Assembly (NCBI GenBank): GCA_002269645.1
Contig: NIVC01001367.1
Coordinates: forward strand, 240,533 to 304,532
Reading direction: 5' to 3'
From: Macrostomum lignano
Lineage: Eukaryota
Length of the DNA stretch: 64,000 nt
Shown: positions 3,070 through 49,398 of the stretch, piece by piece
Layout: each line of letters starts with the position of its first letter
Position numbering within the stretch: the stretch's first letter is position 1
Program-made: the position numbers and the translations under genes
The notes under the pieces: model-generated
The model's input: the letters and a program-made list of their open reading frames with translations, nothing else
Databases searched by the model: none
What the model was told of the DNA's origin: nothing

Positions 3070-4762
3070 ATGCTGCTTCAACGCAGCTTGCTCCCATTGC
3101 TGCCTGTGCTGCTGCTGCTGGCTGGCGAAGTCCCGCTTGCTGCTGCCCGCGGCGGCATGCGGGTGGACATCGACGAGGAGACCTGGCCGGAGGTGCTGGC
3201 TGGCGGCCGCTGGTTCATCAAATTCTACGCGCCCTGGTGCGACGCCTGCCGCAGCCTGGCGCCCACCTGGCAGAACCTGGCGGCCAGTGAGGACCTTCCG
3301 CGGGATGTCAGCATCGCCCAGGTGGACGTCACCAGGAACGAGGCCCTGGCTGGCATGTTCCTGGTCACCGGCCTGCCTTCTCTGTACATGCTGCACGATG
3401 GCCAGTTCTGGCAGCACAGCGGCGACCGGTCACTGCCTGCGCTGCTGCGCTACATCCAGCAGGTGACTGCCGGCTGTGTGGGGCTGTGAGCGCGACTGCT
3501 CAGCTGCTCATGGGGTATGGGATGGCGGCCTGGGCTCAAGGTGTAATGGATCACTAAGTAAACTTGAAGTTGTCCAGAGATGGTATCATGATGAGGGTGG
3601 ACTCTAATCTGGATAAGATGGAATCATGATGAGGATGGACTCAAATCTGGATGAGATGGGATCATGATTAATGTGGACTCAAATCTGGGATGAGATGGGT
3701 TCATGATGAATGTGGACTCAAATCTGGATGAGATGGGATCATGATTAATGTGCACTCAAATCTGGGATGAGATGGGTTCATGATGAATGTGGACTCAAAT
3801 CTGGGATGAGATGGGATCATGATTAATGTGCACTCAAATCTGGGATGAGATGGGATCATGATTAATGTGGACTCAAATCTGGGATGAGATGGGATCATGA
3901 TGAATGTGGACTCAAATCTGCGACGAGATGGGATCATGATGAGGGTGCACTCGAATCTGGGATGAGATGGGATCATGATGAAGGTGGACTCTAATCTTGG
4001 ACGAGATGGGATCATGATGAGGGTGGACTCTAATCTGGGACGAGATGGGATCATGATGAATGTGGACTCAAATCTGGGACGAGATGGGATCATGATGAAT
4101 GTGGACTCAAATCTGGGATGAGATGGGATCATGATGAGGAGACTCAAATCTGGGATGAGATGGGATCATGATGAGGAGACTCAAATCTGGGTTGAGATGG
4201 AATCATGAGGAGGCTTAAATTTGGATGAGGTGGGATCATGATGAGGGTGGACTCAAATCTGGGATGAGATGGGAACACTGACTCAGCAAACGATTCTACT
4301 ATGAGTAGGCAGTTGCGGCTAATACTTGCCACCCGAACTCAGGCCGAGTACGCCCGCCTGCCGCCGCTGCCGTGGTACCGGGTGCCCACAGCTCTGCACA
4401 TGCGCTGTCTCGGCCGCCTCATTCAGGCCGCCGTCCGCCTGAAGAAGCTGCACACTCACCTGGTGGAGGAGCGCGGCCTGCCCTCCCCGCTGGCCTATCT
4501 GGTGCTGGCGCTGGCCACCCTGGTCTCCGGCCTGGTGGCCGGCCTCGTCCTCGTCTGCCTGTGCGACCTGCTGAGCGCCAGGCGGCGGCACCGGCAGCAG
4601 GAGGCGGCCGCAGTTCCCGGCGACGCGAAAGGCGACTCGGCGAAGGTGGACAAGCCGGATGAGGCCAGCGGCGAGGACTCGGACGAGCTGGCCGAGAGTC
4701 CCCGTCCGGCCACTTCCGGTCAGCAAGTGCGGAAACGCGGTGTCAGGAAGGAGACGTCCTGA
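3070..4762 (+). CDS. TMX1: Thioredoxin-related transmembrane protein (TMX1/TMX4 family), 2 exons: 3070-3462 and 4343-4762
   Basis: Signal peptide, then KFYAPWCDAC thioredoxin fold. Phase-0 GT (3463) / AG (4341-4342) intron. Exon 2 has a TM helix and an acidic/basic tail. Family is confident, exact orthologue less so. Confidence 0.85.
3575..4275. repeat. 39-bp minisatellite filling the TMX intron
   Basis: Unit GGGATGAGATGGGATCATGATGAATGTGGACTCAAATCT, about 17-18 copies. Confidence 0.95.
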
Positions 4763-5269: not shown

Positions 5270-5825
5270 TGTGCCCGTCTGCCACTTTCAACTGGCTTTG
5301 ATCTGTGACAGTGCGGTGTGCCAGCAACAACAGAGATGGCTGCCAATTTCAACTGGCTTTGATCTGTGACAGTGCGGTGTGCCAGCAACAACAGAGATGT
5401 CTGCCAATTTCAACTGGCTTTGACCTGACAGTGCGGTGTGCCAGCAACAACAGAGATGTCTGCCAATTTCAACTGGCTTTGATCTGTGACAGAGCGGTGT
5501 GCCAGCAACAACAGAGATGTCTGCCACTTTCAACTGGCTTTGACCTGACAGAGCGGTGTGCCAGCAACAACAGAGATGTCTGCCACTTTCAACTGGCTTG
5601 ATCTGTGACAGTGCGGTGTGCCAGCAACAACAGAGATGTCTGCCAATTTCAACTGGCTTTGATCTGTGACAGTGCGGTGTGCCAGCAACAACAGAGATGT
5701 CTGCCAATTTCAATTAGCTTTGATCTGTGACAGTGCGGTGTGCCAGCAACAACAGAGATGTCTGCCAATTTCAATTAGCTTTGATCTGTGACAGTGCGGT
5801 GTGCCAGCAACAACAGAGATTTCTG
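5270..5825. repeat. 59-61-bp tandem repeat
   Basis: Unit GTGACAGTGCGGTGTGCCAGCAACAACAGAGATGTCTGCCAATTTCAACTGGCTTTGATCT, about 9 copies. Confidence 0.95.
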
Positions 5826-6940
5826 CTCATCAATATAAATCAATCATATCAGAGATGCGCCCTAATAACAAAGTAAACTCTATAACAATAACGAGGTCCT
5901 CTAGAAAAAGCGTCTTCTAGAAATAACGGAATCGGAGTCGTATGCCCCTATCGGTTACTCTAGGGTATCAAAATTAATCAATCAATAATCCTCTAAGTTT
6001 GTCGGAATCGGTCCGCAGATCCTATCCAATCCCTTAGGAATAGGGAGGCCTCAAATTCAATAGACTCAGTAAAATCAACTGATCAGTAACGGCCGGCAAT
6101 AAAACCGCTCTCAATAATCAAATAACGAAGACTCAAACAAAGGCTCACTAATTAGTTTACTTCTCCCTCAGAGATATAGCCTCGCTTAGCTGCTTCGGCA
6201 AGCTCAAGATCTTTGGAGGCTGTTCTGAGTCTGAGATCTCAGCTAGGATTTTGGCTTGTATTTATTGGCAAGTTTTTCGACATACGACATACGTATTAAT
6301 AGTAACATGATTTCTCTTTTGCTGTAAATAGTAAGACGATTCGTCTTTCATCATAAGTAGTAACATGATACATCTTGCTATAGCATGCTTCATAGTTTCG
6401 CTGCGCATGTTAGAGTTCTTAACTGGTGATTGAAGACGGCAATCACTTTACTGGAACTAAAGTACTGGAAAGGAAGAGATGCGAACGGAGAAGCCAGCTT
6501 GCCAAAGTTGTCCGGCTCAATGGCTTTGTATTTACACGACTAATCGAAGTTAAATTGAAATTCGGATCGCATCAGCAGGCAGCTAATTAGGGATTTTGAA
6601 ATTCCATACCGGGGTTTTCATTACTCGATCTCGCCAATTCTGCGCTGCGTTGACAGCGGATGGAGATCTGCATCAAAGTATCTGCCAATTCTTCAAATTG
6701 GCACTCATTTCTTGAAACTGGAAGCTGGGCTGCTGCGATGCGGAGGCGGCTTTCGGGATCGAACCAGTGCGAGATTGGCCTGAAGCATCTGAAGCATCAA
6801 ATTTACCGCCAGCCCCAGCCGTGGTTCCGATTTCAATTTGCCGAATTGCTTCGATAAAAGGATTGAAATTCTGCTTTCGAAAACCATCGGTGGAGCCTTA
6901 CACGCCTCTAGTCCCTACCAGATCATTTATTAGCTGGAAC

Positions 6941-8122: not shown

Positions 8123-8619
8123 CAACAATATACTCGTAATCATACAAAATCGAGTTCGTGCACACAAGGTTGAAAATTTGCTGTCTATTTTTGCTGATAT
8201 TGGAAAACAAAGATTTAAATGGACAACCGCTTCAATTGGACAACCAATCAATTAAATAGAAACCTACATGTACTCCTAATCAACTAATTCAGACACGCTC
8301 TAGTTATCCTTCTTCACGACAGATTTTGATGCAGATTTCGATCCATACTTAAGAATGCAGAACGCATTCAATTGACTGTTTCCAGACACAATTTGCTCGG
8401 TGCGAGTTGGAAAGTGCATCCTACTGCTGTGCTCAAGCTTCGCCCTGGTGTTTAGCATATAGCAACCAGCTATCTTTGGTCTTGAGATCGGGCAGAAAAT
8501 TGGCCTGTTCGAGCCCGGCAATATGAGCGGAATTCGCTCTTGGAGCAAACGAGGCGCGTTTACTAACAGCAGTTTGACGCCAGTTGGGTGGGCCTTCACC
8601 GCCTGGATGGCGATCTTTG

Positions 8620-11315
8620 GTTCGATGTATACATTTATCAGGGAGTGGGGTGGGTGTTTTGCGGGTTCGATATATACATTTATCAGGGAGTGGGGTGGGT
8701 GTTTTGCGGGTTCGATATATACATTTATCAGGGAGTGGGGCGGGTGTTTTGCGGGTTCGATATATACATTTATCAGGGAGTGGGGTGGGTGTTTTGCGGG
8801 TTCGATATATACATTTATCAGGGAGTGGGGTGGGTGTTTTGCGGGTTCGATATATACATTTATCAGGGAGTGGGGTGGGTGTTTTGCGGTTCGATATATA
8901 CATTTATCAGGGAGTGGGGTGGGTGTTTTGCGGTTCGATATATACATTTATCAGGGAGTGGGGTGGGTGTTTTGCGGGTTCGATATATACATTTATCAGG
9001 GAGTGGGGTGGGTGTTTTGCGGGTTCGATATATACATTTATCAGGGAGTGGGGTGGGTGTTTTGCGGGTTCGATATATACATTTATCAGGGAGTGGGGTG
9101 GGTGTTTTGCGGGTTCGATATATACATTTATCAGGGAGTGGGGTGGGTGTTTTGCGGGTTCGATATATACATTTATCAGGGAGTGGGGTGGGTGTTTTGC
9201 GGGTTCGATATATACATTTATCAGGGAGTGGGGTGGGTGTTTTGCGGGTTCGATATATACATTTATCAGGGAGTGGGGTGGGTGTTTTGCGGGTTCGATA
9301 TATACATTTATCAGGGAGTGGGGTGGGTGTTTTGCGGGTTCGATATATACATTTATCAGGGAGTGGGGTGGGTGCTCTGCGGGTTCGATATATACATTTA
9401 TCAGGGAGTGGGGTGGGTGTTTTGCGGGTTCGATATACATTTATCAGGGAGTGGGGTGGGTGTTTTGCGGGTTCGATATATACATTTATCAGGGAGTGGG
9501 GTGGGTGTTTTGCGGGTTCGATATATACATTTATCAGGGAGTGGGGTGGGTGTTTTGCGGGTTCGATATATACATTTATCAGGGAGTGGGGCGGGTGTTT
9601 TGCGGGTTCGATATATACATTTATCAGGGAGTGGGGTGGGTGTTTTGCGGGTTCGATATACATTTATCAGGGAGTGGGGTGGGTGTTTTGCGGGTTCGAT
9701 ATATACATTTATCAGGGAGTGGGGTGGGTGCTCTGCGGGTTCGATATATACATTTATCAGGGAGTGGGGCGGGTGTTTTGCGGGTTCGATATATACATTT
9801 ATCAGGGAGTGGGGCGGGTGTTTTGCGGGTTCGATATACATTTATCAGGGAGTGGGGTGGGTGTTTTGCGGGTTCGATATATACATTTATCAGGGAGTGG
9901 GGTGGGTGTTTTGCGGGTTCGATATATACATTTATCAGGGAGTGGGGTGGGTGCTCTGCGGGTTCGATATATACATTTATCAGGGAGTGGGGCGGGTGTT
10001 TTGCGGGTTCGATATATACATTTATCAGGGAGTGGGGCGGGTGTTTTGCGGGTTCGATATATACATTTATCAGGGAGTGGGGCGGGTGTTTTGCGGGTTC
10101 GATATACATTTATCAGGGAGTGGGGTGGGTGTTTTGCGGGTTCGATATATACATTTATCAGGGAGTGGGGTGGGTGTTTTGCGGGTTCGATATATACATT
10201 TATCAGGGAGTGGGGCGGGTGTTTTGCGGGTTCGATATACATTTATCAGGGAGTGGGGTGGGTGTTTTGCGGGTTCGATATATACATTTATCAGGGAGTG
10301 GGGTGGGTGTTTTGCGGGTTCGATATATACATTTATCAGGGAGTGGGGTGGGTGTTTTGCGGGTTCGATATATACATTTATCAGGGAGTGGGGTGGGTGT
10401 TTTGCGGGTTCGATATATACATTTATCAGGGAGTGGGGTGGGTGTTTTGCGGGTTCGATATATACATTTATCAGGGAGTGGGGTGGGTGTTTTGCGGGTT
10501 CGATATATACATTTATCAGGGAGTGGGGTGGGTGTTTTGCGGGTTCGATATATACATTTATCAGGGAGTGGGGTGGGTGTTTTGCGGGTTCGATATATAC
10601 ATTTATCAGGGAGTGGGGTGGGTGTTTTGCGGGTTCGATATATAAATTTATCAGGGAGTGGGGTGGGTGTTTTGCGGGTTCGATATACATTTATCAGGGA
10701 GTGGGGCGGGTGTTTTGCGGGTTCGATATACATTTATCAGGGAGTGGGGCGGGTGTTTTGCGGTTCGATATATACATTTTTCAGGGAGTGGGGTGGGTGT
10801 TTTGCGGGTTCGATATATACATTTATCAGGGAGTGGGGTGGGTGTTTTGCGGGTTCGATATATACATTTATCAGGGAGTGGGGTGGGTGTTTTGCGGGTT
10901 CGATATATACATTTATCAGGGAGTGGGGTGGGTGTTTTGCGGGTTCGATATATACATTTATCAGGGAGTGGGGTGGGTGTTTTGCGGGTTCGATATATAA
11001 ATTTATCAGGGAGTGGGGTGGGTGTTTTGCGGGTTCGATATACATTTATCAGGGAGTGGGGCGGGTGTTTTGCGGGTTCGATATACATTTATCAGGGAGT
11101 GGGGCGGGTGTTTTGCGGTTCGATATATACATTTTTCAGGGAGTGGGGTGGGTGTTTTGCGGGTTCGATATATAAATTTATCAGGGAGTGGGGTGGGTGT
11201 TTTGCGGGTTCGATATACATTTATCAGGGAGTGGGTTGGGTGCTTTGCGGGTTCGTTGTATAAATTTATCAGGGAGTGGGGTGGGTGTTTTGCGGGTTCG
11301 ATATATACATTTATC
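8620..11315. repeat. 43-45-bp G-rich minisatellite, about 60 copies
   Basis: Unit GTTCGATATATACATTTATCAGGGAGTGGGGTGGGTGTTTTGCGG. It explains all the long repetitive ORFs here. Confidence 0.98.
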
Positions 11316-11907: not shown

Positions 11908-13419
11908 CAAACAACAACAACAAACAACAGAGTACGCTGCCGGTTCGCAAAAGCAGCGTCAGATGGCGCGCTTCGAGGCTTGGGCGCGAACAAAGGCCGC
12001 ACCGCCGGCAGAGTCCGGGGCGCCGGCGTCAGCCAGCAGACAGTCGACGTAGCGCCGTGTCCTCGCCTGTCCCCGCCGGTAGGGTGCCTGCAACGTAAGT
12101 AGCAGCACCTCCTGCACCGGCTCCGGGCAGTAGGCCTCGGCGCGGATGACGTGGCCTGCCAGCTGGAGTCGCCGACGGCGCAGCAGATCGCTAGGACGGG
12201 CCAGGCCGGCGCGATGATAGAGCGCCGTGTTGGTGACTCGCTCGTTGCCGATCTTGAAGGCGGCGCGCAGCAGGCCAGCGTGCGCCGCGTCGACTTGAGC
12301 CTCGAGCGAGTCTGTCAGCGTCCAGGTCTCGGCGTTGTATAACAGGACGGTTTCGATCACCGCCTGGAACAGCGCCGCCCTCTGGCGGTCCGTTAGGGCC
12401 TCGGACTGCAGGACTGACCTTATAGAACGAAAGGCAGCCCAGGCAAGTCCTCGGCGACGCCGCAGATCCTCGCGAACGTCGGGAACCAGACCGCCGAGGT
12501 AGACGAACTGCTGACATCTTGGAAGCTCACTCGCCTGTCCGTCAGCGCCTCGGCAGAAGATTGCAGCCTCGGTGTCATCCGGCACGCATAGCACGACGGT
12601 CTTCTGCGTGTTGACCACCAGGCCGACGCTCGCCGCAACGGCAACCAGCCTATCCAGTTGTCGTTGGGCGCCCTCGACGGTTGAGGACAGCAGGGCGAGG
12701 TCATCGGCGTAGCCAAGCACGCTGAGCCGTCTCTCCGGTTGGCGTCGACCCACGCGTCGCCGCAGCAGGAAGCCGTCGTCGTTGGAAGGCAGAGCAGTCC
12801 GTAGCACCCAGTCAAGCACCAGAATAAATAGGAACGGCGCTAGCGTATCTCCCTGGAGCACCCCGGAGGATGTCTCGAAGAAATCCGATAGGCCGTCCGG
12901 TGTTGAGACAGCAGCCGTCGTGCCGTGGTACAGCGCCATGACAGCAGAAATCAGCAGCTCTGGCACGTTGTACGCACGGAGCACCTCTGGGAGCGCGTCC
13001 CTCACGACCGAGTCGAAGGCCTTCCTGAAATCGACGAAGATCAGGATCAGGGTCAACTGGCGGATGCGCGCCTCCTCGATGACTCGCCGGAGCCAGGATC
13101 TGCGTCACTGTGCCGCGATGGGGCCGGAATCCGTTCTGCTCAGGCCGCAGGTACGGGTCCAGCACAGGCTGTAGCCGCGATAGCAGCATGCGGTTGAACA
13201 GCTTCGCGGCGCAGGACTGTAGGCAGATGCCTCGATGCTCCTCGAGCTTGGTGGTGCCCAGCTTCTTTGGAATGGCGACGATGTGCGCCGTGGTCCATTC
13301 GTTTGGCGCCACCTCACCGGAAAGCACGCGGTTCATCACTCTGACGACCTCAGTGGCCTCGCAGTGGATCCGCAGCGCCTCGGTGGGCACCTCGTCCGGA
13401 CCAAGCGCTTTGCCGCCCG
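11908..13419 (-). mobile_element. 5'-truncated RTE-clade non-LTR retrotransposon
   Basis: RT motifs KALGPDEV, EQNGFR, FVDFRKAFDSV, GVLQGD, GYADD. Frameshift near 13095. (TTG)n 3' tail at 11908-11929. Flanking GATGTAA direct repeat at 11901-11907 and 13420-13426. Confidence 0.9.
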
Positions 13420-15726: not shown

Positions 15727-15784
15727 GTGCGTCTGGCGTTTGTCTTGACGTACTGTACTTGGCGGCTCTCGAGGCAGTTGAGAC

Positions 15785-16628
15785 CAGCCTCCCAGATACT
15801 CAGGCTCGACCAGCCTCCCAGATCCTCAGGTTTGACAAGCCTCCCAGATCCTCAGGTTTGACAAGCCTCCCAGACCCTCAGGTTTGACAAGCCTCCCAGA
15901 TCCTCAGGTTTGACAAGCCTCTCAGATCCTCAGGCTTGACAAGCCTCCCAGATCCTCAGGTTTCACAAGCCTCCCAGATCCTCAGGTTTGACAAGCCTCC
16001 CAGACCCTCAGGTTTGACAAGCCTCCCAGATCCTCAGGTTTGACAAGCCTCCCAGATCCTCAGGTTTGACCAGCCTCCCAGATCCTCAGGTTTGACAAGC
16101 CTCCCAGATCCTCAGGTTTGACAAGCCTCTCAGATCCTCAGGCTTGACAAGCCTCCCAGATCCTCAGGTTTGACAAGCCTCCCAGATCCTCAGGTTTGAC
16201 AAGCCTCCCAGATCCTCAGGTTTGACAAGCCTCCCAGATCCTCAGGTTTGACAAGCCTCCCAGATCCTCAGGTTTGACAAGCCTCCCAGACCCTCAGGTT
16301 TGACAAGCCTCCCAGATCCTCAGGTTTGACAAGCCTCCCAGATCCTCAGGTTTGACAAGCCTCCCAGATCCTCAGGTTTCACAAGCCTCCCAGATCCTCA
16401 GGTTTGACAAGCCTCCCAGATCCTCAGGTTTGACCAGCCTCCCAGATCCTCAGGTTTGACAAGCCTCCCAGATCCTCAGGTTTGACAAGCCTCCCAGATC
16501 CTCAGGTTTGACAAGCCTCCCAGATCCTCAGGTTTGACAAGCCTCCCAGATCCTCAGGTTTGACAAGCCTCCCAGATCCTCAGGTTTGACAAGCCTCCCA
16601 GATCCTCAGGTTTGACAAGCCTCCCAGA
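15785..16628. repeat. 26-bp minisatellite, left part
   Basis: Unit CAAGCCTCCCAGATCCTCAGGTTTGA, about 31 copies, interrupted by the LINE. Confidence 0.97.
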
Positions 16629-16876
16629 GCACGCGAAGGCGTATTCAGCACGCCAGTGAAGTATGAGACAGACCAGGCCTATGGGCTACGGTCTGCGATG
16701 CTTCACGCCTGCCCCTATCTTCAGCAGGTCAAGGCTGGAGGGAGGTATGCCCCCGCTATTTACCGCTGGCAGCCGCAGACCCCCCCTCCACGCTGTCTCG
16801 CAAGTCGACCCAGGGTACTCGTCCCCGCGTGTGTTCAAGGCAGACCCTAGGGCTGCTGGACAGACTGGGCTCCGAC
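16629..16876 (+). ncRNA. HDV-like self-cleaving ribozyme at the LINE 5' end
   Basis: P1 GCACGCG (16629-35) / CGCGTGT (16826-32) with a G1-U wobble. P3 GGG/CCC. L3 T-AC-TCGT. P1.1 AC/GT. P4 16835-60. J4/2 CAGAC with C16861. P2 GTCG-A-CCCA / TGGG-CTC-CGAC. Confidence 0.85.
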
Positions 16877-17097
16877 GCTGGCGACCCATCCAGTGGCTTC
16901 GGCCGAACTTGGGTATGCGGGTCTGGCTCGCCAGCCTGCAGGCCGTGGTACTGCTTAACGTACCCTCTAATGCCTAAGGTTTTTGACCGTGCCGATGGGC
17001 TGGAAGGCCGGGGGGTTGTCCGGTCGCTAACGGTCCTTTTCTTTTTCTTCTTTCCTCTTTCTTTTGTGACTCAGCTCACTCCTTCCCGCTTTCAGCT

Positions 17098-18541
17098 ATG
17101 GCGTCATCCGCCTCTTTCAACCCCGCTGAAGCCGGGGCCCCGGCAACTCCGGCCGGTGACTCTGGCACCAGCGCCGCCCCACCGGGGGCAGATGGGCTTG
17201 CCGCCGGCTCGGCCAGTGACATGCCCGCACGCGCAACCGGGCCCTCCACTGAAGCCCGACGCGCCCGCAACCAACGCCGCAACGAGCGGCGACGACGGCG
17301 ACTGCGGGATACTGCGGGCCGGCCACCGGCGGAGGGGGAACCTAGGGAGGGCGAGGCTGCTGTTGGGCCGAAAGGAGCCACAGCAACCCCTGCCCCCCAG
17401 GATACAACCCCCGCTGGTGAGCCACCCAGTAAACCTGCTACAAGCGCGGCTGGGCCTTCGGGAACCGCCGCCACTAACTACGCCTCAAAGGTCAAGCTCC
17501 AACCGGCGGTCATCGTCTTCGGGGAAGAGCAAGACCTCACGGCCGAGGAGCTCGACAGTGCCTGGCGCACCATCGATGCTGCGCTCATCGACGAGCTCCT
17601 GGCGGGCCGCCCTGTGAGCGTGGTCAAGTCTGCCAAGACCGACGGCTGCATCTTCATCTGGTGCAGCTCGGAGGAGAGCAGCCGCAGTCTACGCGAGCTT
17701 CTGCCAAAGCTGAACTGGCCCAAGAAGCTCGGCAAGCTCGTCTTCGCCAGCGAGGGCGAGCGACAAAAGACCCAGCGCTTTCGCGTCTGGATCCCGGCCG
17801 GTAATGCCATTAAGTTCGGAGATCAGCTTAGGCAAATATTGCTAAAGCTGCACCCAGACCTTGAGGTCAACGGGCTCTCCTACACCACGCCACTTCCCGC
17901 AAGGAGAAGGGGGCTACGGTGATCCTAGGGCTCTCTGATGACTGGGCTAAGCGCTTGCCGCCTAAGTCCACAATCCATATTGGTCTGACTCAGCTGACCA
18001 TCCTCCGTTGCGAGGAGCGGAAAGCTGATGAAGCCAAGAATGCCAAGGCTTCCGAAACCGGAACTGGGGCCCAGGCTCCTCCGGCAAAGAAGCCGAGGCA
18101 AACGGCCGATCCTATGCCCGGTAAGGCAGTTCGCGCTGCTGAAACCGGAAATCGCAATCGCAGACCCGCCAGGAGCACCCGGAGGTCCGGGCGTATCTTC
18201 GGGCGTATCGTGAGCGGGCCCGCGCTTCTCACGCTCCACCCCAACAGCCAGAAGGCCAGGCTGTAAGCGGGGAGGCGCCGACCGACTGGTTCGAGTCTGT
18301 GATTCACCAGGAGGCTGGCGCCACCTGCATCGACCTGACCGACGAGGCAGAGGGGACGGGCAGTGACAGCACCGAAGCACGCAGGGGAGGCGACGGTAAC
18401 GTCCACGCTGGGCTCACGACCGCGGAGGACTCCACAGCCACCATAACTGCCGAGGACGCTGAAACTCCCATGGAGGTCTGCGGGTCACCCACCACTGAAA
18501 AGGAGGACGTTGACCTGCTCAACGATTCCCCAACTGCGTGA
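17098..18541 (+). pseudogene. LINE ORF1 (frameshifted)
   Basis: Pieces 17098-17922, 17919-18266 and 18299-18541 read as one frameshifted ORF. It includes the NYASKVK motif, similar to the YA..V motifs common in ORF1 proteins. Confidence 0.7.
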
Positions 18542-18543
18542 TT

Positions 18544-21500
18544 ATGATCAGCAATCAGGGAATCCATTGCTTGCAGATTAATCTGCAACACTGCGTCGCA
18601 GCCTCGGTCAACCTTATGCGTTACGCCGAGCTCGACAAGCCGGGGCTCATCCTCGTCCAGGAACCCTGGACTCTCAATCATGCAAGCCTCAAAACATCCC
18701 TGCCGGCTACAATTGTTTTAATACTTACCCTCGCGAGACCAACCAGCCTCCCAGAGCTTGCATCTTTGCGAGCAAAACGCTCAGTGCGTGGCTCAGATAG
18801 GACCTGTCGAAAAGGGACATCTGCGTCATCCAATCCGAGGACCTCCTTCCTGGGAAGACCACCCTCATTGCCTCGGTTTATTTACCAGGTAATGCTGCGG
18901 TCGTCCCCAGAGCCCTCGCTACGCTGGTAGAGCTCTGCTCTGCCAAAAACTACGAGCTCATTGTTGCCGGCGACGTCAACGCCCACCACACTCACTGTGG
19001 CAGCACTGGCACTAATCAGAGAGGCGAAGACCTCCTAGCCTACGTTGCCTCTACGACCCTCGAGTTCTGCAACTCTGGGTCCACCCCTACCTTTGACAAC
19101 GCACGGTGGTCGGAGGTGATCGACGCTACGCTCGCAACGCCCAGACTCTACCAGAGTATTGGGGCATGGGGGGTGCTTCCAGTGTTCTCACTCTCGGATC
19201 ACAAGTTCATCTCCTTCAACCTGATGGCCGCGCGTAGCGCTACTCGTGTTACGTGGAAACGGAACGCCAGAAATACTGATTGGGAAACTTTCGGGCTCGC
19301 CCTGAAGGAATTCCATCGGTCTTCTGGCCAACCATCCACGATCACGTCGTGCCGAGAGGCGGATGAGTGCGCGACTGTTTTGACAAAGACGCTAACCGCC
19401 GCCTTTGAGGCGTCCTGCCCTTTAAAAGCCTATAAAGGGAAAAAGTCCGCGCCGTGGTGGAATCCCGAGCTCGGCAACCTCCGTCGCAGGGCTAAGAGAC
19501 TCCACCGCAGAGCAACTAAAACTAAGAGCCCAGCGGACCAAACAGCCTATCATGAAGCAATTCATGAGTTTAAAAGGCAGGTTAGGAATGCAAAGGCTCA
19601 AAAATGGCGACAATACTGTGAGGAGCTAGAGGGCTCACGCCCCACCTCCAGAGTTGTGAAAGCGCTCACGCTGGACAAAATGTCTAAGCTCTCCTCGGTC
19701 AAACGCACCGACGGTACGTCCACGGACAACCCAGGGGAAACGCTTGCTGTAATGCTCACTGCGTTTTTCCCCAACGAGCCAGCTAACCCTACCACTCCGG
19801 ATCACTCGGAGGGAGGTCACGCGCTGGCTGCCTCTATCATCACGGAGGACCGCATCGTGAGAGCGGCTAATTCCTTCAAGCCTTTCAAAGCCCCAGGACC
19901 CGACGGCATTGTACCGGCCCTCCTAAGAGAGGCAGTTAAATGCCCAGGCTTCCTACGCAAACTTTGCAGCCTTCTTCGGGCATGCATTACGCTTGGTTAT
20001 GTCCCACAGGCATGGACCGAGGCAAAGGTGATTTTTATCCCTAAGCCAGGCCGCCTGGACTACCATTCTATCAAATCCTTCAGACCGATCAGCTTGACCT
20101 TCTCCCTGGTCAAGCTGATGGAGAGACCGGTGCTTTGGCGCCTTCTCTCTGTTGAGCTGAAGAACAAACCTCTCAGCGAGAACCAGCACGCTTTTCGGGC
20201 GGGTCGCTCCACTGAAAGCGCGCTGCACGTCCTGGTCGATAAACTCGAGAAGGCCGTGCTTGGTAACGGCTTTGCTCTGGGGATCTTCCTGGACATCATT
20301 GGCGCCTTCGATAACGTCCTCTTCGAGGCGTTCCGAAGAGCTCTTTGTGAGAGGCAAACGCACTCACATCTCACCAGATGGATCATGTACATGATCAGCC
20401 ATCGCACGGCCACCGCCAGTCTGCTGGGCTACCAGAGGACGGTCCCCATCTGCAAAGGTAGCCTGCAAGGTGGGGTGCTGTCTCCAGTTCTCTGGAATAT
20501 GGTCATCGATGAGCTCCTCCGGGATGTTCGGCCTGACCCCATTCTGAAAGTTGGATATGCGGACGATGTCACCGCGGTGGCATCTGGTCCGTCCCCTGAT
20601 ACCCTCAGGGACCTTCTTCAGAACTTCATCTACGCCGCTGAGCAATGGGTGGATCACTGTGGTTTAAGGCTCTCTGAGACTAAGACCGCAGCGATCATGT
20701 TCACTAGCAGGACCGAGTGGCAGATTCAGCCGCTCACGCTTTACGGAAGGGAAATCCCCGTCTGCAAGCAGACTAAATGTCTAGGTATTACCCTGGACCA
20801 CAGGCTGAACTGGTCACCCCACGTTCAAGCAAAAGCCAAAAAGGCCTTCGCAGTCCTCGCGCAATTGCGCAGGGCTGTCGGCACCACCTGGGGGCTCACC
20901 CCCAAGCGCCTCTGGTGGATCTACACTGCAATGGTTACGCCCGCTATCTCGTATGGCGGCCTGATCTGGGCTAGCGCCCTGCAGATAAAGACCTGTCTAA
21001 AGACTCTCAGGAGAGCGCAAGGGCGCGCATGTCGCATGATCATGAGCGCCCCTCCGCCTGCTCCTTTCGATGGCCTCAACGCCTTCCTCAACATTCCTCC
21101 GCTGGGCATCTTTGTACGCAGGGAAGCGGCTAAGACTGCCCGCCGTCTAGCTGACGCTGGCATTCGAATCCAGCCCCATAGGGCCATGGCTAAGCGCAAG
21201 CTTCTGCCCCACGCTGACCTCTGCCTCAAGGACTTGAGAGACAGCGGCGGGCTCCACGTCCTATCTGACGGCGAACCCCGCACTCTCAACCTCTTTCAGC
21301 GCTACAAGGTCACCATCCCCTCTAGGGATGCTGCCAATGACCACTGGAATTTCCAGGAGGTCCATTGCTACACGGACGGATCCATCAAAGACGGTCGCGC
21401 CGGCTTTGGGGTCTGCATCATCATCAACGGCCGCGTAATTGCCACGCATGCCCAGCACACTGGTAGACTCTCCACAGTCTTCCAGAACAAAGTCCTTGCC

Positions 21501-22250
21501 ATCAGCTCTTGCACTGCAGAGCTGAACGCCAAGGGTACGAGAGGAAAGACTATTGTCATCCACTCCGACAGCCAAGCGGCCTTACAGGCCCTTTGCCACA
21601 CCACAACGAACTCCCGGACAGTCGCCGACTGCGCCCGGCAGCTCAACCTCCTGGCCAGTAGCAATACTGTCAGGCTGAAGTGGATCCCAGGGCACGCAGG
21701 GTTTTCGGGGAACGAGCTGGCAGACACCCTCGCCAAGAGGGGCGGCTCTGGCTCTTTCTTCGGCCCTGCCCCCTGGTCCCTATGCCCTTGACAGTCATCA
21801 ATCGTCAGATCGATGACTGGGCTGACTCCCTCCACAGGGACAGATGGGCGGGCACCAAAAACTGCTGGCAATCTCGTGCCGCGGTTCCTTGCCCGTCTCG
21901 CAGGCTCAGAAACGTCCTTCTGAACCAGAATCGGAAGGATATTCGAGCCCTTGTCATGACCCTCACCGGCCATGGCTCACCTCGCCAGGCACTGCTTCCT
22001 CCGAGGTGACCTCGAGTGCGAACTTTGCCCCTTTTGCGAGCACGACAATGAAGATGCTCAGCACTTTGTTTGTCACTGCCCTTTCTTTAACAGAGACCGG
22101 CTACGCTACCTCGGGCCGAACCCGTCCATCGACGAGGTCTGCCAGCCCGACAGCATCTCACGGCTCATCCAGTTCCTTCGGGCGACTAGACGAGCCAGTT
22201 TCTTCCCAACGGAAGATCACGCTGCAGGACGGACCGGCGGACCACCCTGA
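18544..22250 (+). pseudogene. LINE ORF2: APE endonuclease, RT, RNase H, C-terminal CCHC (several frameshifts)
   Basis: APE: LQINLQH, LVQEPW, AGDVNAHH, SDH. RT: KAPGPDGI, ENQHAFR, LQGGVLSP, GYADD. RNase H: YTDGS, WIPGHAG..GNELAD. Zn knuckle: CPFCEHDNEDAQHFVCHC. Confidence 0.92.
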
Positions 22251-22349
22251 CGGCCCCACGCCTCTGCGGGCCTTCAGGGGCTAGCGGAATGGGCGACCCT
22301 CGCCTCCCCGCTGTGTCTACGGACCACCCTGCAGCTAAGTCAAGTAAGT

Positions 22350-22915
22350 CAAGCCTCCCAGATCCTCAGGTTTGACAAGCCTCCCAGATCCTCAGGTTTG
22401 ACCAGCCTCCCAGATCCTCAGGTTTGACAAGCCTCCCAGATCCTCACGTTTGACAAGCCTCCCAGATCCTCAGGCTTGACAAGCCTCCCAGATCCTCAGG
22501 TTTGACAAGCCTCCCAGATCCTCAGGCTTGACAAGCCTCCCAGATCCTCAGGTTTGACAAGCCTCCCAGATCCTCAGGTTTGACAAGCCTCCCAGATCCT
22601 CAGGTTTGACAAGCCTCCCAGATCCTCAGGTTTGACAAGCCTCCCAGATCCTCAGGTTTGACAAGCCTCCCAGATCCTCAGGTTTGACAAGCCTCCCAGA
22701 TCCTCAGGTTTGACAAGCCTCCCAGATCCTCAGGTTTGACAAGCCTCCCAGATCCTCAGGTTTGACAAGCCTCCCAGATCCTCAGGTTTGACAAGCCTCC
22801 CAGATCCTCAGGTTTGACAAGCCTCCCAGATCCTCAGGTTTGACAAGCCTCCCAGATCCTCAGGTTTGACAAGCCTCCCAGATCCTCAGGTTTGACAAGC
22901 CTCCCAGATCCTCAG
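22350..22915. repeat. 26-bp minisatellite, right part
   Basis: The same unit continues for about 22 copies after the LINE. Confidence 0.97.
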
Positions 22916-30800: not shown

Positions 30801-31792
30801 CAAAGACCTGGAGGCCGCAGTAAAAGCCTGTCGCACCTGCCAGCTCAATCAGGCGGATCCATCCAAGGCCCCGGTGCAGCCATGGCCATTCCCGACTGAG
30901 CAATGGGAGCGGTTGCACATCGACTTCGCGGGACCCGTGGACGGCCGCACTTACCTGGTCCTGGTCGACGCACACAGCAAGTGGCCAGAGGTGCACAGGA
31001 TGAGCAGCACCACTGCAACTGCGACGATCAGCTGCCTGCGAGAAATCTTCGCTCGTCTCGGCCTACCGAGAACCTTGGTGTCGGACAACGGGCCTCAATT
31101 CGCTTCAGCCGAGTTCGCTGAGTTCGTCAGTTCCAACGGCATCCGGCACATCTTCTCGGCGCCATTCCACCCGGCGACCAACGGCCAGGCCGAGTGCTTC
31201 GTCCAGGTGCTGAAGCGGCATCTGAGTAAGTGCGGTCACTCCGACGCGCAACTTCAACGACTGCTGATGGCCTACCGCAACACTCCGCACAGCGTCAGTG
31301 GCACCGCGCCAAGTCAGCTGCTCATTGGCCGCCGGCTGCGCAGCCGGCTGGACCTCCTGACACCGTCGTTGACTTCGGCCATGCAACAGCGACAGCAGCT
31401 TCAGCAGCAGCGGCCAGCGCGCCAGTTCCAGCCTGGAGATCGCGTGCTCTACCGCGATTTCAGCACTGCTGCTCGTACTGGAGAAAGCAGCCGCTGGGCC
31501 GAAGGTGATATCGTCAATGCCGGCACTCGCAACTGCACAGTCGATTCTGGACGCGGTGTACAAGCGCGACACGCTGACCAGCTGCTGGCGGCTCCCGCTG
31601 GGTTGGCCGAGTCGAACAGCAGCACTACCCCGACCGAGGACTGCGCGGCATCTGACGCTGGCGGCACGCCGGCCTCGCCACAGGCAGACACGGCTGACTC
31701 TGCTAACGAGGCACCCCGGCGCTACCCGAATCGAGTTCGAGCACCATCTGACAGATTGATGCTGCAGTGAGGGCGTTATCTAAGGGGGGAGA

Positions 31793-34685: not shown

Positions 34686-35382
34686 TAGCCTGTTGCCACG
34701 GCACTAGACAGTCCAGTCTTTGTCTCCACTTAATGTCGTATCAGGCGTGCACTGCGTCTCAATTGCATGCAATCGGTACGAGCCTAAGAGGTCTTCTGAT
34801 TTGGGCTAGGCATTGCGTGACTGAGAGTCCATCCATAATTTGATTTGCTTCTCGGAGGTGCCGCACTCTGGCGGGCAATGTTCTCAATAAAATTGAATGC
34901 TTATAATAGTCTACTGATCTGAGAACAGTGGGATGTTAAACTGGTGACAACTGCTTATTGAGCTCACTGTTTGTGCACCTGTCATCTGCCCCGCTATCTC
35001 TGCTGCGCTGTTGACTGACATTATTGTTTATTTGCTTGGGCCGTCATGCGCAGCTTGTGTGCTCCCTCGTGCCGAGTCCCGTCTTTCCATCCGGGGCTTC
35101 CTGCCTCCTTCATAAGCCTTGGCTTTTTATAATCGGGCCGCTGTGTTTGCGGCGTGTCTGCAGGATGCCGGGCTAGCGGCTTGCAAGGAACGGGAGTGAG
35201 GGGACTGCGCCAGTGCAGGGCAGGACCGCACGGCTTTGGCATTGGCTCTGCCGGCCTGGCATGGGCAGCTGGCTGGGGTTGAGGAAGCGAGCGTATTTGC
35301 ATACATGGCGTGAGGACCCAGGGCTTGCTGCGCCCACGGGAGCTGACAGCCGACGATCTCCCAGTCTCGCTCAGTCACTCAG

Positions 35383-36964
35383 GTTCTCAGCCTCAGCTGT
35401 AAAATTCTCCGCGGCAATTCACCTGGTTGAGCGGGCCGCCACCCTGGACGAATCCGCTGTGGTTCGAACTGTGCAGGCGGTGCTGCAGCGCTGCCTTGAC
35501 TCGGACCGCCTCACCAGCGAGCTCTTTCTGCAGCTCGTGCGCCAAACAAGCTGCGAATCGTCAGGTAGTCATCCGACCACAACGCCTCGACCGCACCAGC
35601 TCCTCTGCGCAGCCTGTGCCATCCTCAGACCGGCCTGGGAGCCAGTCCTGCGACTTCTCCGCTGCCACCTGGCTCACCTGTCTAGGCAGCAGCCGTCAGG
35701 TGACCCGGCTCTCTGCGCGCAGTTTTGCCTCGCCTGCCTCGCCAGACCTGCCCGGCCTGCCAGGCGGAGATTCCCGCCCTCGGCTTCGGAGCTCGCAGCC
35801 ACCTTCGCTCGCGCCAATGCGCGCGTCAGCGTCCACCTGTTGAACGGGGAGACACGCCAGCTCGAGTTTCACTCCTACCTGACTGGCGCGGAGGCCTCAG
35901 CCGCGGTCATCGCTCAGGTGCCGCTGCTGCCCGGCGCCACCGGCTGGTCTCTGTTTGAGCAATTTCCTGGCGCGCCTGAGCGCTGCACGGGGCCGGCTGA
36001 GTTCATCGGCGACACTCTGTTCCGCTGGGAGCAGCACGGCCAGCTCAGTGGCAGCCTGATGCTGGTCCGCTTGGTGCTGAAGAAGCGCCTCTTCATAGAG
36101 CCCTATGTCGACGAGTCTGATGCTGTGGAGGTGTCACTGATGGCCTACCAGTGTCTCACTGACGTGTTTGAGGCCCGCTTGCCGCTCACGCTGGACCTGG
36201 CGACCAAACTTTGCGGCCTTCAGGCAGCCCGGGAAGCCTCCGCAGCCGGCACCGACCCAAGCCTCGTGCGCCGGATCCTGCCCCGACGCTGGCGCAACCG
36301 CGTCCCACTCGACGCTGTTCTTGCAGCCGCCACTGCTGCCGCCTCTGAGGCGGCCGCCGCCGCCCCTGAAGATGGCCCGGACCGCCGACGTGCCCTCGAC
36401 CTGCAGCTCCTGGCCGCCTGCCGCTCCGCATCTCCGCTGTTTGGCTGCACTGTTTTTCCCACCCGCCTCCACAGCCCGCTAGCGGCGGCCACTGCGGCCA
36501 TTGGAGACTCCTGCGCTCTCGCTGTCGGCGAAGCGGGCTTGCAGCTCCTGCCGGAGTCTGCCGTTGCCGGCGCTGATGACAACGATTGCGATGTTGTCGA
36601 AGCTGACTGGCGGCGGACGACACCGCTAGCCGCATTCTCCTACCCAGACCTGCTCGGATTTGGCTCCGACAGCCGCGCTCAGCTGTCCCTTCAGCTGCGT
36701 GGTCAGGGCCGCCTGTCGCTGCACTGCCGCCAGGCCAACCAGGCGGCACACCTCATTCGCGACTACCTGCTAGCAGCGCGCCAGCAGATCGCTTCTGCTT
36801 CGGCCTCCGACTCCGCCGCGTCCACCTCGGGTACCAGCGCTGCTTGCGCTTCCTCCGTTGTTGTGCACCGCAGCGGCAGCAGTCGCCGGCGGCGTCCCGA
36901 CAACCGGCTTGGCAACGGCAGCAGCAGCCAGAAACAGCTGCCGGAAACTGAAACGCAACTGTAG
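35383..36964 (+). CDS. MyTH4-FERM domain protein (PLEKHH/myosin-tail-like); 5' end uncertain
   Basis: MyTH4-like LTSELFLQLVRQT..RRFPPS, followed by FERM-like VHLLNGE..GWSLFE..LVLKKRLF..LCGLQ..FGCTVF. Candidate acceptor CACTCAG at 35382. Confidence 0.8.
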
Positions 36965-39674: not shown

Positions 39675-40442
39675 ATGGCGCAGCAGGAGAGCACAGCAGG
39701 CAGCATGTCCTTCAAGTTTCTGGTGGTGCTGTTCACACGGGTGCCCTTCGCCAACGCCCTGACGCTGCTGATGCTGTTGAGCGAGCGGGCCAAGCGGGAG
39801 TCTGAGCCGCCGCTAGCTCCCCGCCTCATCTACGTGCTGGTGTTCGGCTGCGTGGCCCTGGGCTTTGCCGTCTCCCTGAACATCCGCAGGCGGCAGGCGC
39901 TGCTTATCTACTGCGGCCTGCTCATGTACATGGCCTACCTCACCGTCACTGCGCCCGCCCTGCGCTACAAGTCCTGGGTTCGAGCCCGCCTCGCCCTGCC
40001 CAGCCTGGGCTGCTGCGCCGTCTTCCTTTACTTCGCCGCCATCTGCGACACGCTGGCCTCGACCTCCGGGCAGCTGCGTCAGGCCGGCCGCTCCCTGCTT
40101 GGCGTCTTCGCCATCGGCTCCGCCTACGCCTTCGCCACCGTGCCTGAGGAGGCGGAGGCGCTGCGCCGCAATATCGGCGACTTCGTGCCGCAGGCGCACT
40201 GGGTCGTAGCCATCCTCTACTGCATGGCCGGCCTGGCGCTGCTGTCCAACGTCAGCTTCTACGGCGCCCTCAAGCTGCTGGCCTGCACGATGCTCTGCCT
40301 CACCCTTGCCAACGATATGCGGCCCAACTACTGGCTGTACCGGGTCGGCATGGACTTCTGGTGCCACGCCAGGCTGCTGGTAGACAACCTGACTGTGCTG
40401 CTAGGCATCGGCATCGTGCTGCAGCGCAAGCGGCTGGGCTGA
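39675..40442 (+). CDS. TMEM101: Transmembrane protein 101
   Basis: 255-aa multi-pass protein. The pattern LFTRVPF..LML.SERA..RRR..Y.SW.RAR..YW...DFW matches TMEM101 as I recall it. Acceptor TTGCAG at 39666. Confidence 0.85.
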   Translation: MAQQESTAGSMSFKFLVVLFTRVPFANALTLLMLLSERAKRESEPPLAPRLIYVLVFGCVALGFAVSLNIRRRQALLIYCGLLMYMAYLTVTAPALRYKSWVRARLALPSLGCCAVFLYFAAICDTLASTSGQLRQAGRSLLGVFAIGSAYAFATVPEEAEALRRNIGDFVPQAHWVVAILYCMAGLALLSNVSFYGALKLLACTMLCLTLANDMRPNYWLYRVGMDFWCHARLLVDNLTVLLGIGIVLQRKRLG

Positions 40443-40544
40443 CGGCCTGGCTGACCCGTCTGACTGAGACTGCCTGTTTGCGCTGGGGTCCCCTGCTATA
40501 TAGGTCCTTTGCTTTCTTTAGCCTTTCGTACTGTCAGAATAAGC

Positions 40545-41070
40545 AGCCAGCCTCCCAGATCCTCAGGTAGAGCAACTACCTCCTCTGCAGATCCTCAGGC
40601 TGAGCAGCCAGACTCCCAGATTCTCAGGTAGAGCAACCACCCCCTCTACAGATCCTCAGGCTGAATAGCCAGCCTCCCAGATCCCCAGACTGAGCAGCCA
40701 GCCTCCCAGATCCCCAGACTGAGCAGCCAGCCTCCCAGATCCTCAGGCTGAGCAGCCAGCCTCCCAGATCCCCAGACTGAGCAGCCAGCCTCCCAGATCC
40801 TCAGGCTGAGCAGCCAGCCTCCCAGATCCCCAGACTGAGCAGCCAGCCTCCCAGATCCTCAGGCTGAGCAGCCAGCCTCCCAGATCCTCAGGCTGAGCAG
40901 CCAGCCTCCCAGATCCTCAGGCTGAGCAGCCAGCATCCCAGATCCTCAGGCTGAGCAGCCAGCCTCCCAGATCCTCAGGCTGAATAGCCAGCCTCCCAGA
41001 TCCCCAGGCTGAGTAGCCAGACTCCCAGATCCTCAGGATGAGCAGCCAGCCTCCCAGATTCTCAGGCTGA
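40545..41070. repeat. 29-bp variant of the CAGCCTCCCAGATCCTCAGG minisatellite
   Basis: Unit GAGCAGCCAGCCTCCCAGATCCTCAGGCT, about 18 copies. Confidence 0.95.
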
Positions 41071-41889
41071 GTAGGCCGTACTACTTGCCCATAAACTGTA
41101 TTGTTTACAACACGAGAAGACCGGGCGGCATCCCCAGGCAGTATTGCAGTGTCTGTGTGACTGATTCGCTCACACGCTTCAGTTAGCTAATTTAGCTGCA
41201 TGCTAACCATAAAGTACAATAGGTGCAATTGTAACCTGCAAAGATGTTTCTTTTCCAGCAGGCAGCTGTAAGCAAATCACATGAATTGCAATTCAGCATT
41301 TCTGTTGCAATCGGTCTGCTTCTCTCGTCTCTCTGACCACAAAAAAACTTTTAAAATGTAAAATGCCATCTGCCAAAATTGGCAAAAGAGCTTCTGTTTT
41401 CGCTAGCGCCTCATGCACTCACCACGCAGTGCTAGAAGTGCCCCGGCCCCCGCTGCGCCTGCAGCTCACAGTTGGCCAGTGATGCAGCTGAACTAGCTTC
41501 CTGCATGCAGCGGCTCAGCTGCTTGACCCCGCATTCACTGCTCCGCCGGGTCCGCAACTTGTCAGTCATGACTAATTGATGACTCCCGGCATTGTTCCCC
41601 TGCTAACGAAATTGCTGCTCCTAGTAGCAGCAGGCATGTGTTCCGGAGAGGTCCGCAGTCTCCACCCTTCACCCGTGTTGCCCAGCCAGCTCTGCGCCCT
41701 CTGTGTAATTTTGTCGAGGCAGCTGGCTGTCTGTACAGCAGCCGCACCTTTGCTTTCCGTGCCTGAAATGCGGCTGTCTGGCTCTGTTTATGCGCAGCAG
41801 ATATAAATTGAATGGCAAATATGTAGCCAAGATGAGCAAAGTCTTCTAATCGTTCCTGGCTTTCGCTACTTTGTTCCTTTCGTGTTTGT

Positions 41890-42865: not shown

Positions 42866-43189
42866 ACGCTGACTCATCTGACTCATCTATATTTTAAAAC
42901 ATATTTAAACTGCTTCTTTGCCCTGTAGCATAGCCGTGTAGTGCAGCCAGTGAGCTGCTGGGTCTTAACAGCGTCTGGAATGAGCTCAACATCTGAGCTG
43001 CTTTGTTAATTTGTAAAACTTAAGTAATTGGGACGGAAATATTAAATTAATATAATAAATATAATGACTGCACTGTAGCCCCTGTACTCTTAGCCATAAT
43101 TAATCGTTGCAGTCTTTGCTTCATTATTTGACTTCAGCTTACACATCTGGCTTGGACTTTCAACAGCTCTGTGAGGACACTGAAGCTCT

Positions 43190-48715: not shown

Positions 48716-49014
48716 CTCAGCCTCATGCTTAAAATAATTCGCGATTCCGCCTTGTATTCCCTATGGGTGTCCTTCCAGATATAAACAAGTATAAATTCCT
48801 ATTTATCTTTTTGCAATTCCTATCCAGACATTGTCGTTGTTTTACCCACTGAAATCAATAGCGTCGTGGTGAAATATGGCGTTTTCAATGCATCAAATTC
48901 CCTTTTTATTGGTTTGCAATATTTTTTCTTTCTACGATTTCATAATAGAAAAGTTTGTTACTGTGTTAACGAATTTATTGGATTTGCGAGATTTCTTTGT
49001 CGATTCGTTAATCA

Positions 49015-49365
49015 TCAGCTGCATCAGGCCAGTCCCCAGCATCCTCATCTGCATCAGGCCGGTCCCCAACATCCTCATCTGCATCAGGCCAGTCCCCAGC
49101 ATCCTCATCTACATCATGCCAGTCCACAGCACCCTCAACTGCATCAGGCCAGTCCTCAGCATCCTCAGCTGCATCAGGCCGGTCCCCAACATCCTCATCT
49201 GCATCAGGCCAGTCCCCAGCATCCTCAACTGCATCAGGCCAGTCCTCAGCATCCTCAGCTGCATCAGGCCGGTCCCCAACATCCTCATCTGCATCAGGCC
49301 AGTCCCCAGCATCCTCAACTGCATCATGCCAGTCCTCAGCATCCTCAGCTGCATCAAGCCAGTGC
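49015..49365. repeat. 30-bp minisatellite
   Basis: Unit GCATCAGGCCAGTCCCCAGCATCCTCATCT, about 12 copies. Confidence 0.95.
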
Positions 49366-49398
49366 CCAGCCTCCCAATCCCCATCGCCTCGTCCGCAG

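Follow-up and report, generated by a model that had tools for sequence, protein, structure and literature searches.

Within the 64,000-nt stretch of Macrostomum lignano DNA analysed here (contig NIVC01001367.1; the whole stretch is hereafter called the window), positions 16629–16876 are likely to be the DNA copy of a self-cleaving ribozyme of the hepatitis delta virus (HDV) family. The ribozyme would form the 5′ terminus of a family of long interspersed nuclear elements (LINEs) from a Macrostomum-like flatworm, a family with two open reading frames (ORFs) and with apurinic endonuclease-like (APE), reverse transcriptase (RT) and RNase H domains. The reading of this segment as an HDV-type double pseudoknot is supported by the exact position of the element boundary, by a chance test and by covariation in two relatives of the element.

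The element is a 5,721-bp retrotransposon insertion (16629–22349) of the non-LTR type, which lacks long terminal repeats; it is present in a single copy in the window and lodged inside an array of a 26-bp satellite. The sequences that define its boundaries are the following:

15782–16628, unstranded: host 26-bp satellite upstream of the element, unit GACAAGCCTCCCAGATCCTCAGGTTT (Tandem Repeats Finder)
16616–16628, unstranded: 5′ copy of the target-site duplication (TSD), 13 bp, CAAGCCTCCCAGA, identical to 22350–22362
22350–22362, unstranded: 3′ copy of the TSD, 13 bp, CAAGCCTCCCAGA; the satellite picks up again here, the array running to 22915

When the element and one copy of the TSD were removed in silico, the satellite was restored with no mismatch over 78 nt. 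The perfect duplication, together with this restoration, fixes the 5′ boundary to the nucleotide and makes G16629 base 1 of the element. By position, the predicted cleavage site thus coincides with the element's 5′ end, G16629 being the first base after the TSD; in an intact relative described below (L002), the corresponding G1 is nt 1 of the contig.

The original prediction, made from the sequence of the window, had proposed a complete HDV-like fold starting immediately after the TSD and including a long structured J1/2 junction. All the helices that it named (P1, P2, P3, P1.1 and P4), as well as the L3 loop and a cytosine in J4/2, were found in the HDV order at the positions given for them:

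16629–16635, + strand: 5′ strand of P1, GCACGCG; G16629 is G1, with the predicted cleavage 5′ of it
16636–16803, + strand: J1/2 peripheral domain, 168 nt, with a closed multi-hairpin fold
16804–16812, + strand: 5′ strand of P2 (GUCG, a bulged A, CCCA), distal part 16804–16807, proximal part 16809–16812
16813–16815 with 16823–16825, + strand: P3, GGG/CCC, enclosing L3
16816–16822, + strand: L3, UACUCGU (TACTCGT in DNA), with conserved U, C and G positions
16817 with 16834 and 16818 with 16833, + strand: P1.1, A16817-U16834 and C16818-G16833, its 5′ side lying within L3
16826–16832, + strand: 3′ strand of P1, CGCGUGU, forming 7 bp with 16629–16635 (G1·U and six Watson–Crick pairs)
16833–16838, + strand: 3′ strand of P1.1 (G16833, U16834), then J1.1/4, UCAA
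16839–16857, + strand: P4 hairpin, 8 bp with one mismatch (A16844·G16852) and a CUA loop
16858–16865, + strand: J4/2, GGACAGAC, including C16861
16866–16876, + strand: 3′ strand of P2 (UGGG, CUC, CGAC), proximal part 16866–16869, distal part 16873–16876; the bulged A and CUC form an A/CUC internal loop

The helices follow one another in the order P1, P2, P3, P3′, P1′, P1.1, P4, P2′, which is the nested double pseudoknot that characterizes HDV-like ribozymes. Both the fold and the exact 5′ end proposed originally are therefore borne out, as is the structured character of J1/2 considered below. A nested minimum free energy (MFE) fold of the whole 252 nt recovered P2, P3, a P4-like hairpin and the J1/2 domain; P1 is missing from it because P1 forms a pseudoknot with P2. 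The 5′ strand of P1 also has local pairing options, namely ACGC-GAAG-GCGU and a second GCACGC at 16648 in the window, and CCUGC-AAUG-GCAGG in L002. Such local pairing (16629–16653 in the window; nt 1–19 in L002) could produce an alternative, inactive conformer competing with P1.

Two relatives of the element could be compared with the window. The first, L001, comes from a JGI metagenome and has an ORF1 with 76% identity; the contig is cut off within J1/2 and keeps the 3′ two-thirds of the structure. The second, L002, is a Logan contig from ERR14788467 with an intact ORF1 and an intact ORF2 of 1,232 amino acids, the latter 61% identical to that of the window. Its P1 5′ strand, GCCTGC, occupies contig nt 1–6 and aligns with 16629. 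At the other end, the L002 contig extends about 530 nt beyond the conserved 3′ terminus of the element (5960–6492), into unrelated sequence with opposite-strand ORFs. A start at G1 combined with 3′ read-through is the pattern expected of a ribozyme-processed transcript, although it is only suggestive of one.

When the 21 core pairs of the window were compared with those of L002, 13 were identical, one had changed on one side, seven had changed on both sides yet remained paired, and none was broken. All 42 pairing cells of the two sequences were filled, as against 13–20 of 42 when the 3′ partners were slid by 1–3 nt. The one-sided change affects pair 1 (G·U in the window, G-C in L002). The double changes are distributed over P1 (pair 3, A-U to C-G; pair 4, C-G to U-A), both pairs of P1.1 (A-U to C-G; C-G to U-A) and P2 (one distal and two proximal pairs). 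The changed distal pair of P2, U-A in the window, is C-G in both L001 and L002, while the proximal helix differs in sequence and stays paired. L001 shares the layout of P2, P3, L3, P1.1 and P4 with the window: its P2 pairs GCCG-A-CCCAAA with UUUGGG-CAA-CGGC, P3 is GGG/CCC, P1′ reads CGCGAGC, P1.1 has one C-G pair and one U·U, and the 8 bp of P4 are free of mismatches. In L002, P4 has a wholly different sequence and is a hairpin all the same, with 11 bp. The covariation expected of an HDV-like ribozyme is thus present, in a comparison of two to three sequences. The original prediction would have been refuted by full-length copies starting elsewhere and devoid of P1/P1.1 covariation; in L002, P1 begins at nt 1 and both P1 and P1.1 covary. 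It had also regarded the AC/GU form of P1.1 as a rare compensatory variant. The compensatory nature of this helix is confirmed by L002 (C-G plus U-A), but its rarity is not, since P1.1 forms other than G:C/G:C have been published (PMC13635239).

The L3 positions and the J4/2 cytosine on which catalysis would depend are conserved as well. L3 reads UACUCGU in the window, UUCUCGU in L001 and UCUCCGU in L002, so that all three share the initial U and the CG; these are the positions to which roles have been assigned in HDV-family ribozymes, U and G forming a reverse wobble (PMC3774820, PMC13635239). In J4/2, a cytosine corresponding to C16861 is kept in all three sequences. Being the sole J4/2 cytosine so retained, C16861 is, by its position, the putative general acid. 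The CAA of the P2 internal loop was also considered as an alternative J4/2 and was rejected as too distant from P3 and P1.1.

The J1/2 domain, 168 nt in the window and 158 nt in L002, has the same independent, closed multi-hairpin architecture in both. The z-scores of its MFE are −2.76 and −2.77, respectively, and none of 200 shuffles folded equally well. A two-sequence alifold consensus of the window and L002 contains seven compensatory pairs within this domain. Large J1/2 domains have precedents: inserts of 216–498 nt occur in silkmoth R2 ribozymes, where parts of them are needed for activity (PMC3774820), and a ‘pinch’ role has been described for the P1.2 helix of such domains (PMC4908430). 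If drz-Agam-2 is a guide, the structured J1/2 probably brings P1 and P2 side by side (PMC4908430).

For the chance tests, the descriptor asked for a 6–7-bp P1 with G as its first base, a J1/2 left free up to a length of 300 nt, a P2 no shorter than 4 bp, a P3 of 3 bp, an L3 matching U...CG., two pairs in P1.1, a hairpin as P4 and, within J4/2, a C. With its anchor at 16629, it was matched by one of 60,000 dinucleotide-preserving shuffles, a figure that is optimistic because the descriptor was composed after the sequence of the window had been viewed. Without the anchor, false positives arose at a rate of 0.375 per shuffled 64-kb window, both strands included, which explains an additional minus-strand match in the window (17833–17640) and many matches in GC-rich bacterial metagenome contigs. 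The minus-strand match, which lies antisense to ORF1 and is absent from L001 and L002, was set aside as being at chance level. Applied out of sample to L002, the unanchored descriptor gave a single match, with P1 at contig nt 1.

Besides the optimism of the anchored figure, several observations weigh against an HDV-family ribozyme. At the Rfam gathering score, no ribozyme family matched the window. No HDV-family model of Rfam matched either, whether 16300–17300 was scanned at E-values up to 10 or L001, L002 and the more distant relatives L125–L128 at E-values up to 1; these scans returned chance-level hits and no ribozyme family. The curated covariance models (Rfam HDV, CPEB3, drz-Agam and related families) thus fail to recognize the segment. 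Descriptor and covariance-model searches of other copies had been put forward as a check in the original prediction; the descriptor matched L002 once, at nt 1, and the Rfam models gave no HDV-family match. The J1/2 insert of 158–168 nt plausibly accounts for this silence of Rfam. Moreover, the comparison set comprises three sequences (the window, L001 and L002), of which only the window and L002 carry P1. The G1·U wobble is found only in the window, L002 having G1-C and the P1′ of L001 also ending in C. The adenine that follows the J4/2 cytosine in the window (C-A-G-A-C) is absent from L001 (C-G-U-G) and from L002 (C-U-G-C). This adenine has been called ‘constrained’ in R2 ribozymes (PMC3774820), and in a crystal structure it contributes the single base triple formed with P3 (PMC13635239); either the family can do without it, or catalysis is less efficient in the relatives. 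Lastly, the second GCACGC (16648–16653) satisfies the descriptor too, with a P1 of 6 bp. Were that the true P1, cleavage would occur 19 nt into the element, and the terminus at 16629 would have to arise in some other manner. We consider this highly improbable: the helix would have 6 bp rather than the 7 bp available at 16629, the segment is locally paired with 16638–16642 in the J1/2 fold, and L002, whose P1 aligns with 16629, offers no second P1 candidate. It could also be argued that a pseudoknot descriptor this loose, J1/2 being left free, will be satisfied by chance in GC-rich DNA, as the unanchored false-positive rate, the minus-strand match and the many bacterial matches illustrate. This explanation is effectively refuted by the scarcity of matches among shuffles at the TSD-defined first base and by the recurrence of the same architecture, with covariation, at nt 1 of an independent relative.

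The missing J4/2 adenine in L001 and L002, the unconserved wobble and the lack of an Rfam match would be understandable if the segment were part of a conserved but non-catalytic, structured 5′ untranslated region (UTR), acting as an internal promoter, as a translation or internal ribosome entry site (IRES)-like element or as a protein-binding site, with the RNA's 5′ end set by transcription initiation. Conserved blocks do extend over the whole 470-nt 5′ UTR, beyond the ribozyme, and an overlap of promoter and ribozyme is known in L1Tc (PMC3383444). However, a DNA promoter needs no RNA covariation in P1/P1′, P1.1 and P2, where seven double changes and no broken pair were counted. Furthermore, the L3 U, C and G, the 3-bp P3 and the J4/2 C are placed exactly as the HDV active site demands, and two independent elements have P1 starting with their first base; a purely non-catalytic role appears improbable. 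A different proposal is that the ancestral ribozyme was active and that the window copy has been inactivated by mutation, just as its ORFs have been, by four in-frame stops and two frameshifts. Relative to the other sequences, the window shows an A·G mismatch in P4 (A-U in L001), a proximal P2 of 4 rather than 6 bp and, compared with L001 and L002, one extra nucleotide in J4/2. These differences fit slight decay of a dead copy in which the ribozyme core is nearly intact: P1, P1.1, P3 and L3 are unimpaired, the C-A-G-A of J4/2 is canonical, and P4 is the helix that R2 ribozymes can most readily do without (PMC3774820). Inactivation is a real possibility, if an unlikely one; it concerns the window copy only and is compatible with an HDV-family ribozyme in the element family.

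How such a ribozyme would cut, through which residue, and what it would do for the element may be proposed by analogy with R2, R4/Dong, Baggins, RTE and L1Tc (PMC3774820, PMC3185411, PMC4035085). The element would be transcribed by read-through from upstream DNA, here the satellite, or from its own promoter. The nascent RNA would fold co-transcriptionally, the P1–P1.1–P4 stack forming beside P2–P3 while the J1/2 domain keeps P1 and P2 together. HDV-like ribozymes cut at the first nucleotide of P1 and need no sequence upstream of it, and their Mg2+-dependent self-scission leaves 2′,3′-cyclic phosphate and 5′-OH ends. HDV-family ribozymes employ a J4/2 cytosine as general acid together with Mg2+ (PMC13635239); here, C16861 and a bound Mg2+ would cut immediately 5′ of G16629. 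The upstream RNA would be discarded, and the RNA of the element would begin at its own first base, with a 5′-OH. Since the ribozyme would be retained in the released RNA, each full-length copy would inherit it. For other elements, it has been suggested that the ribozyme takes part in translating ORF1 (cited in PMC4908430).

It is tempting to go one step further and to speculate that the family represents a divergent HDV-type subclass that escapes current models, characterized by a conserved, independently folding J1/2 of about 160 nt and by a J4/2 that works without the canonical adenine. We regard this as rather doubtful. Were it true, J1/2 would be more than a linker and might serve as an activity switch or ‘pinch’, as a platform for element proteins, or as an internal promoter as in L1Tc; the start of the L002 contig at G1 and its 3′ read-through would then reflect real cleavage in vivo.

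The ribozyme occupies the first part of the 470-nt 5′ UTR, and the remainder of the element is organized as follows:

16877–17097, + strand: rest of the 5′ UTR, with a polypyrimidine tract (17036–17065) and blocks that L001 and L002 also have
17098–18266, + strand: ORF1, with weak, sub-threshold similarity to DUF4780 and a frameshift near 17877
18568–22250, + strand: ORF2, with APE, RT, RNase H and a Cys/His tail; frameshift at about 18672–18684; stops at 18798, 21789, 21921 and 21957
22251–22349, + strand: 3′ UTR, ending in ...CTGCAGC TAAGTCAAG TAAGT and lacking poly(A); L002 has the terminal motif too

The domain order of ORF2 is APE, RVT_1, RNase H, followed by the Cys/His tail. Pfam recognized RVT_1 and RNase_H in ORF2 of the window and Exo_endo_phos, RVT_1 and RNase_H in ORF2 of the intact relative (P0002). 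The best match of the endonuclease among solved structures is TRAS1, of the R1 clade (1.5e-13). Two ORFs, the second with APE, RT and a C-terminal RNase H, constitute the architecture of the LOA/R1/I group, and assignment of the element to the LOA/R1 group is consistent with this APE–RT–RNase H architecture and with the TRAS1 match. The closest proteins are M. lignano UniRef entries, with identities of up to 95% over part of ORF2, and the relatives of ORF1 are nearly all from M. lignano. The homologues returned for ORF2 bear no clade names. This copy is dead, ORF1 being interrupted by one frameshift and ORF2 by one frameshift and four in-frame stops. The earlier wording ‘active or recently active’ does not hold for this copy; an intact relative, L002, does exist elsewhere.

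Downstream of the ribozyme, the 5′ UTRs of the window, L001 and L002 have blocks in common, for example GGCTTCGGCC and GTCCGGTCGCTA.CGGTC. The CT-rich tract in the 5′ UTR of the window stands in place of about 100 nt found in both L001 and L002. At the 3′ end (22331–22362), the element carries a tandem 9-mer, TAAGTCAAG TAAGT followed by CAAG, in which the first four bases of the TSD complete the second copy; L002 ends with the same ...CTGCAGCTAAGTCAAAG motif. The completion of the 9-mer by the TSD suggests that microhomology between the 3′ end of the RNA and the nicked target primes reverse transcription.

Searches for additional members with ORF1 and with an ORF1 profile returned one JGI contig, the ORF1 of L002 itself and M. 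lignano UniRef entries, and no further DNA of the family; the metagenome contigs scanned by ORF1 contained no further members either. The DNA pattern GGGTNNNCGTCCC...GCNNCGRCGC proved too loose and yielded only GC-rich bacterial noise, and a stricter pattern gave three chance matches, all bacterial, among genome contigs; viral contigs had none. More distant relatives, with 34–46% identity in ORF2, either are without their 5′ ends (L123, L124 and L133) or have 5′ UTRs that are unrelated and that the descriptor does not match convincingly (L125–L129), so that a ribozyme cannot be claimed for the clade as a whole. In L127 and L128 (37% identity in ORF2), the two copies diverge upstream of a GGGATAC heptamer whose exact complement, GTATCCC, follows after about 185 nt (199–205 and 386–392 in L127; 119–125 and 304–310 in L128). 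This heptamer pair is not preceded by an HDV-type P3/L3 core and could be a different 5′ structure or a product of chance.

The surroundings of the element are rich in repeats. A 29-bp satellite at 40542–41071, 18 kb away, is akin to the 26-bp array (15782–16628 and 22350–22915) and shares with it the core GCCTCCCAGATCCTCAGG. Minisatellites are unusually abundant in the window, which contains more than 15 arrays with units of 13–66 bp, for instance at 3577–4274, 5277–5826, 8619–11315, 43189–44134 and 51028–52197. The array at 8619–11315, 60 copies of a 45-bp unit, gives rise to spurious long ORFs at 8523–11175. Other remnants of mobile elements are a reverse transcriptase fragment just upstream of the satellite (11959–13056, minus strand) and an ORF with an integrase core (30874–31770, plus strand). 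Host-type domains were found on long uninterrupted ORFs at 35213–36964 (MyTH4/RA), 39675–40442 (TMEM101), 46235–47863 (multi-C2H2 zinc finger) and 48876–50114 (HAD hydrolase), and they indicate a metazoan genome. An exact look-up found no entry for the TMEM101-like ORF in the public gene collection, and ORF1 of the element likewise has no exact record.

The predicted ribozyme adds a free-living flatworm lineage and a LINE family with APE, RT and RNase H to the elements with HDV-type 5′ ends. For annotation, it provides the repeat family with an exact, mechanism-based 5′ boundary. HDV-type ribozymes with a long J1/2 may evade Rfam-style scans and are probably under-counted in invertebrate genomes. 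The three sequences also constitute a natural set of variants bearing on the requirements of the HDV core, with G·U or G-C at the cleavage site, three forms of P1.1, and a J4/2 with or without the adenine.

The non-LTR elements R2, R4, Dong, Baggins, L1Tc and RTE are established cases of a ribozyme at the exact 5′ end (PMC3774820). R2 ribozymes of Drosophila, silkmoths, a planarian and other hosts likewise form a double pseudoknot where a non-LTR element has its 5′ end, and in Drosophila cleavage occurs at the exact 5′ junction (PMC3774820). As in the window, their P1 has 6–7 bp with compensatory changes between lineages, their P3/L3/P1.1 core is conserved and their P4 is variable. However, R2 has a single ORF and a restriction-like endonuclease, is specific for 28S ribosomal DNA and is co-transcribed with ribosomal RNA, whereas the element described here has two ORFs and APE, RT and RNase H domains, and this copy lies in a satellite; in addition, the J4/2 adenine is constrained in R2 but unconserved among the window, L001 and L002. 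By its APE, RT and RNase H, the element is closest in type to Baggins/LOA and ingi-type elements. In Baggins1 (LOA), RTE and L1Tc/ingi, that is, in APE-type LINEs, cleavage takes place at the first nucleotide and frees the RNA from a co-transcript (cited in PMC3774820; PMC3185411; PMC4035085). The L1Tc ribozyme is compact (77 nt) and doubles as a promoter, whereas here the ribozyme spans 248 nt, has a structured insert of 168 nt and belongs to a free-living flatworm host.

A helix-closed J1/2 between P1 and P2 is also found in drz-Agam-2, where it speeds cleavage up to about 1000-fold by pinching (PMC4908430); there it is a single helix, unlike the conserved multi-hairpin junction of about 160 nt seen here. 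As regards P1.1, the two-pair helices of the CPEB3, C. briggsae and Ackermannviridae ribozymes are likewise not G:C/G:C (PMC13635239). Fast crystallized HDV-family ribozymes have U:A plus C:U or U:A plus U:U in this helix (PMC13635239). The P1.1 of L001 (C-G plus U·U) resembles these weakened forms, while that of the window, whose pairs (A-U and C-G) are both standard, deviates less than the crystallized variants do. Published ribozymes of flatworm LINEs comprise the predicted planarian R2 (PMC3774820) and the twister variants that non-LTR elements of Schistosoma mansoni carry at their 5′ ends (PMC8501958). The latter are likewise self-cleaving ribozymes of flatworm LINEs but differ in ribozyme class, element families and the parasitic life of the host. 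A literature search found no published link between Macrostomum and any ribozyme. LINE 5′-end HDV-like ribozymes, long J1/2 domains and non-GC forms of P1.1 are thus not new in kind; what is new is the host lineage, the element family and the particular conserved J1/2 junction domain.

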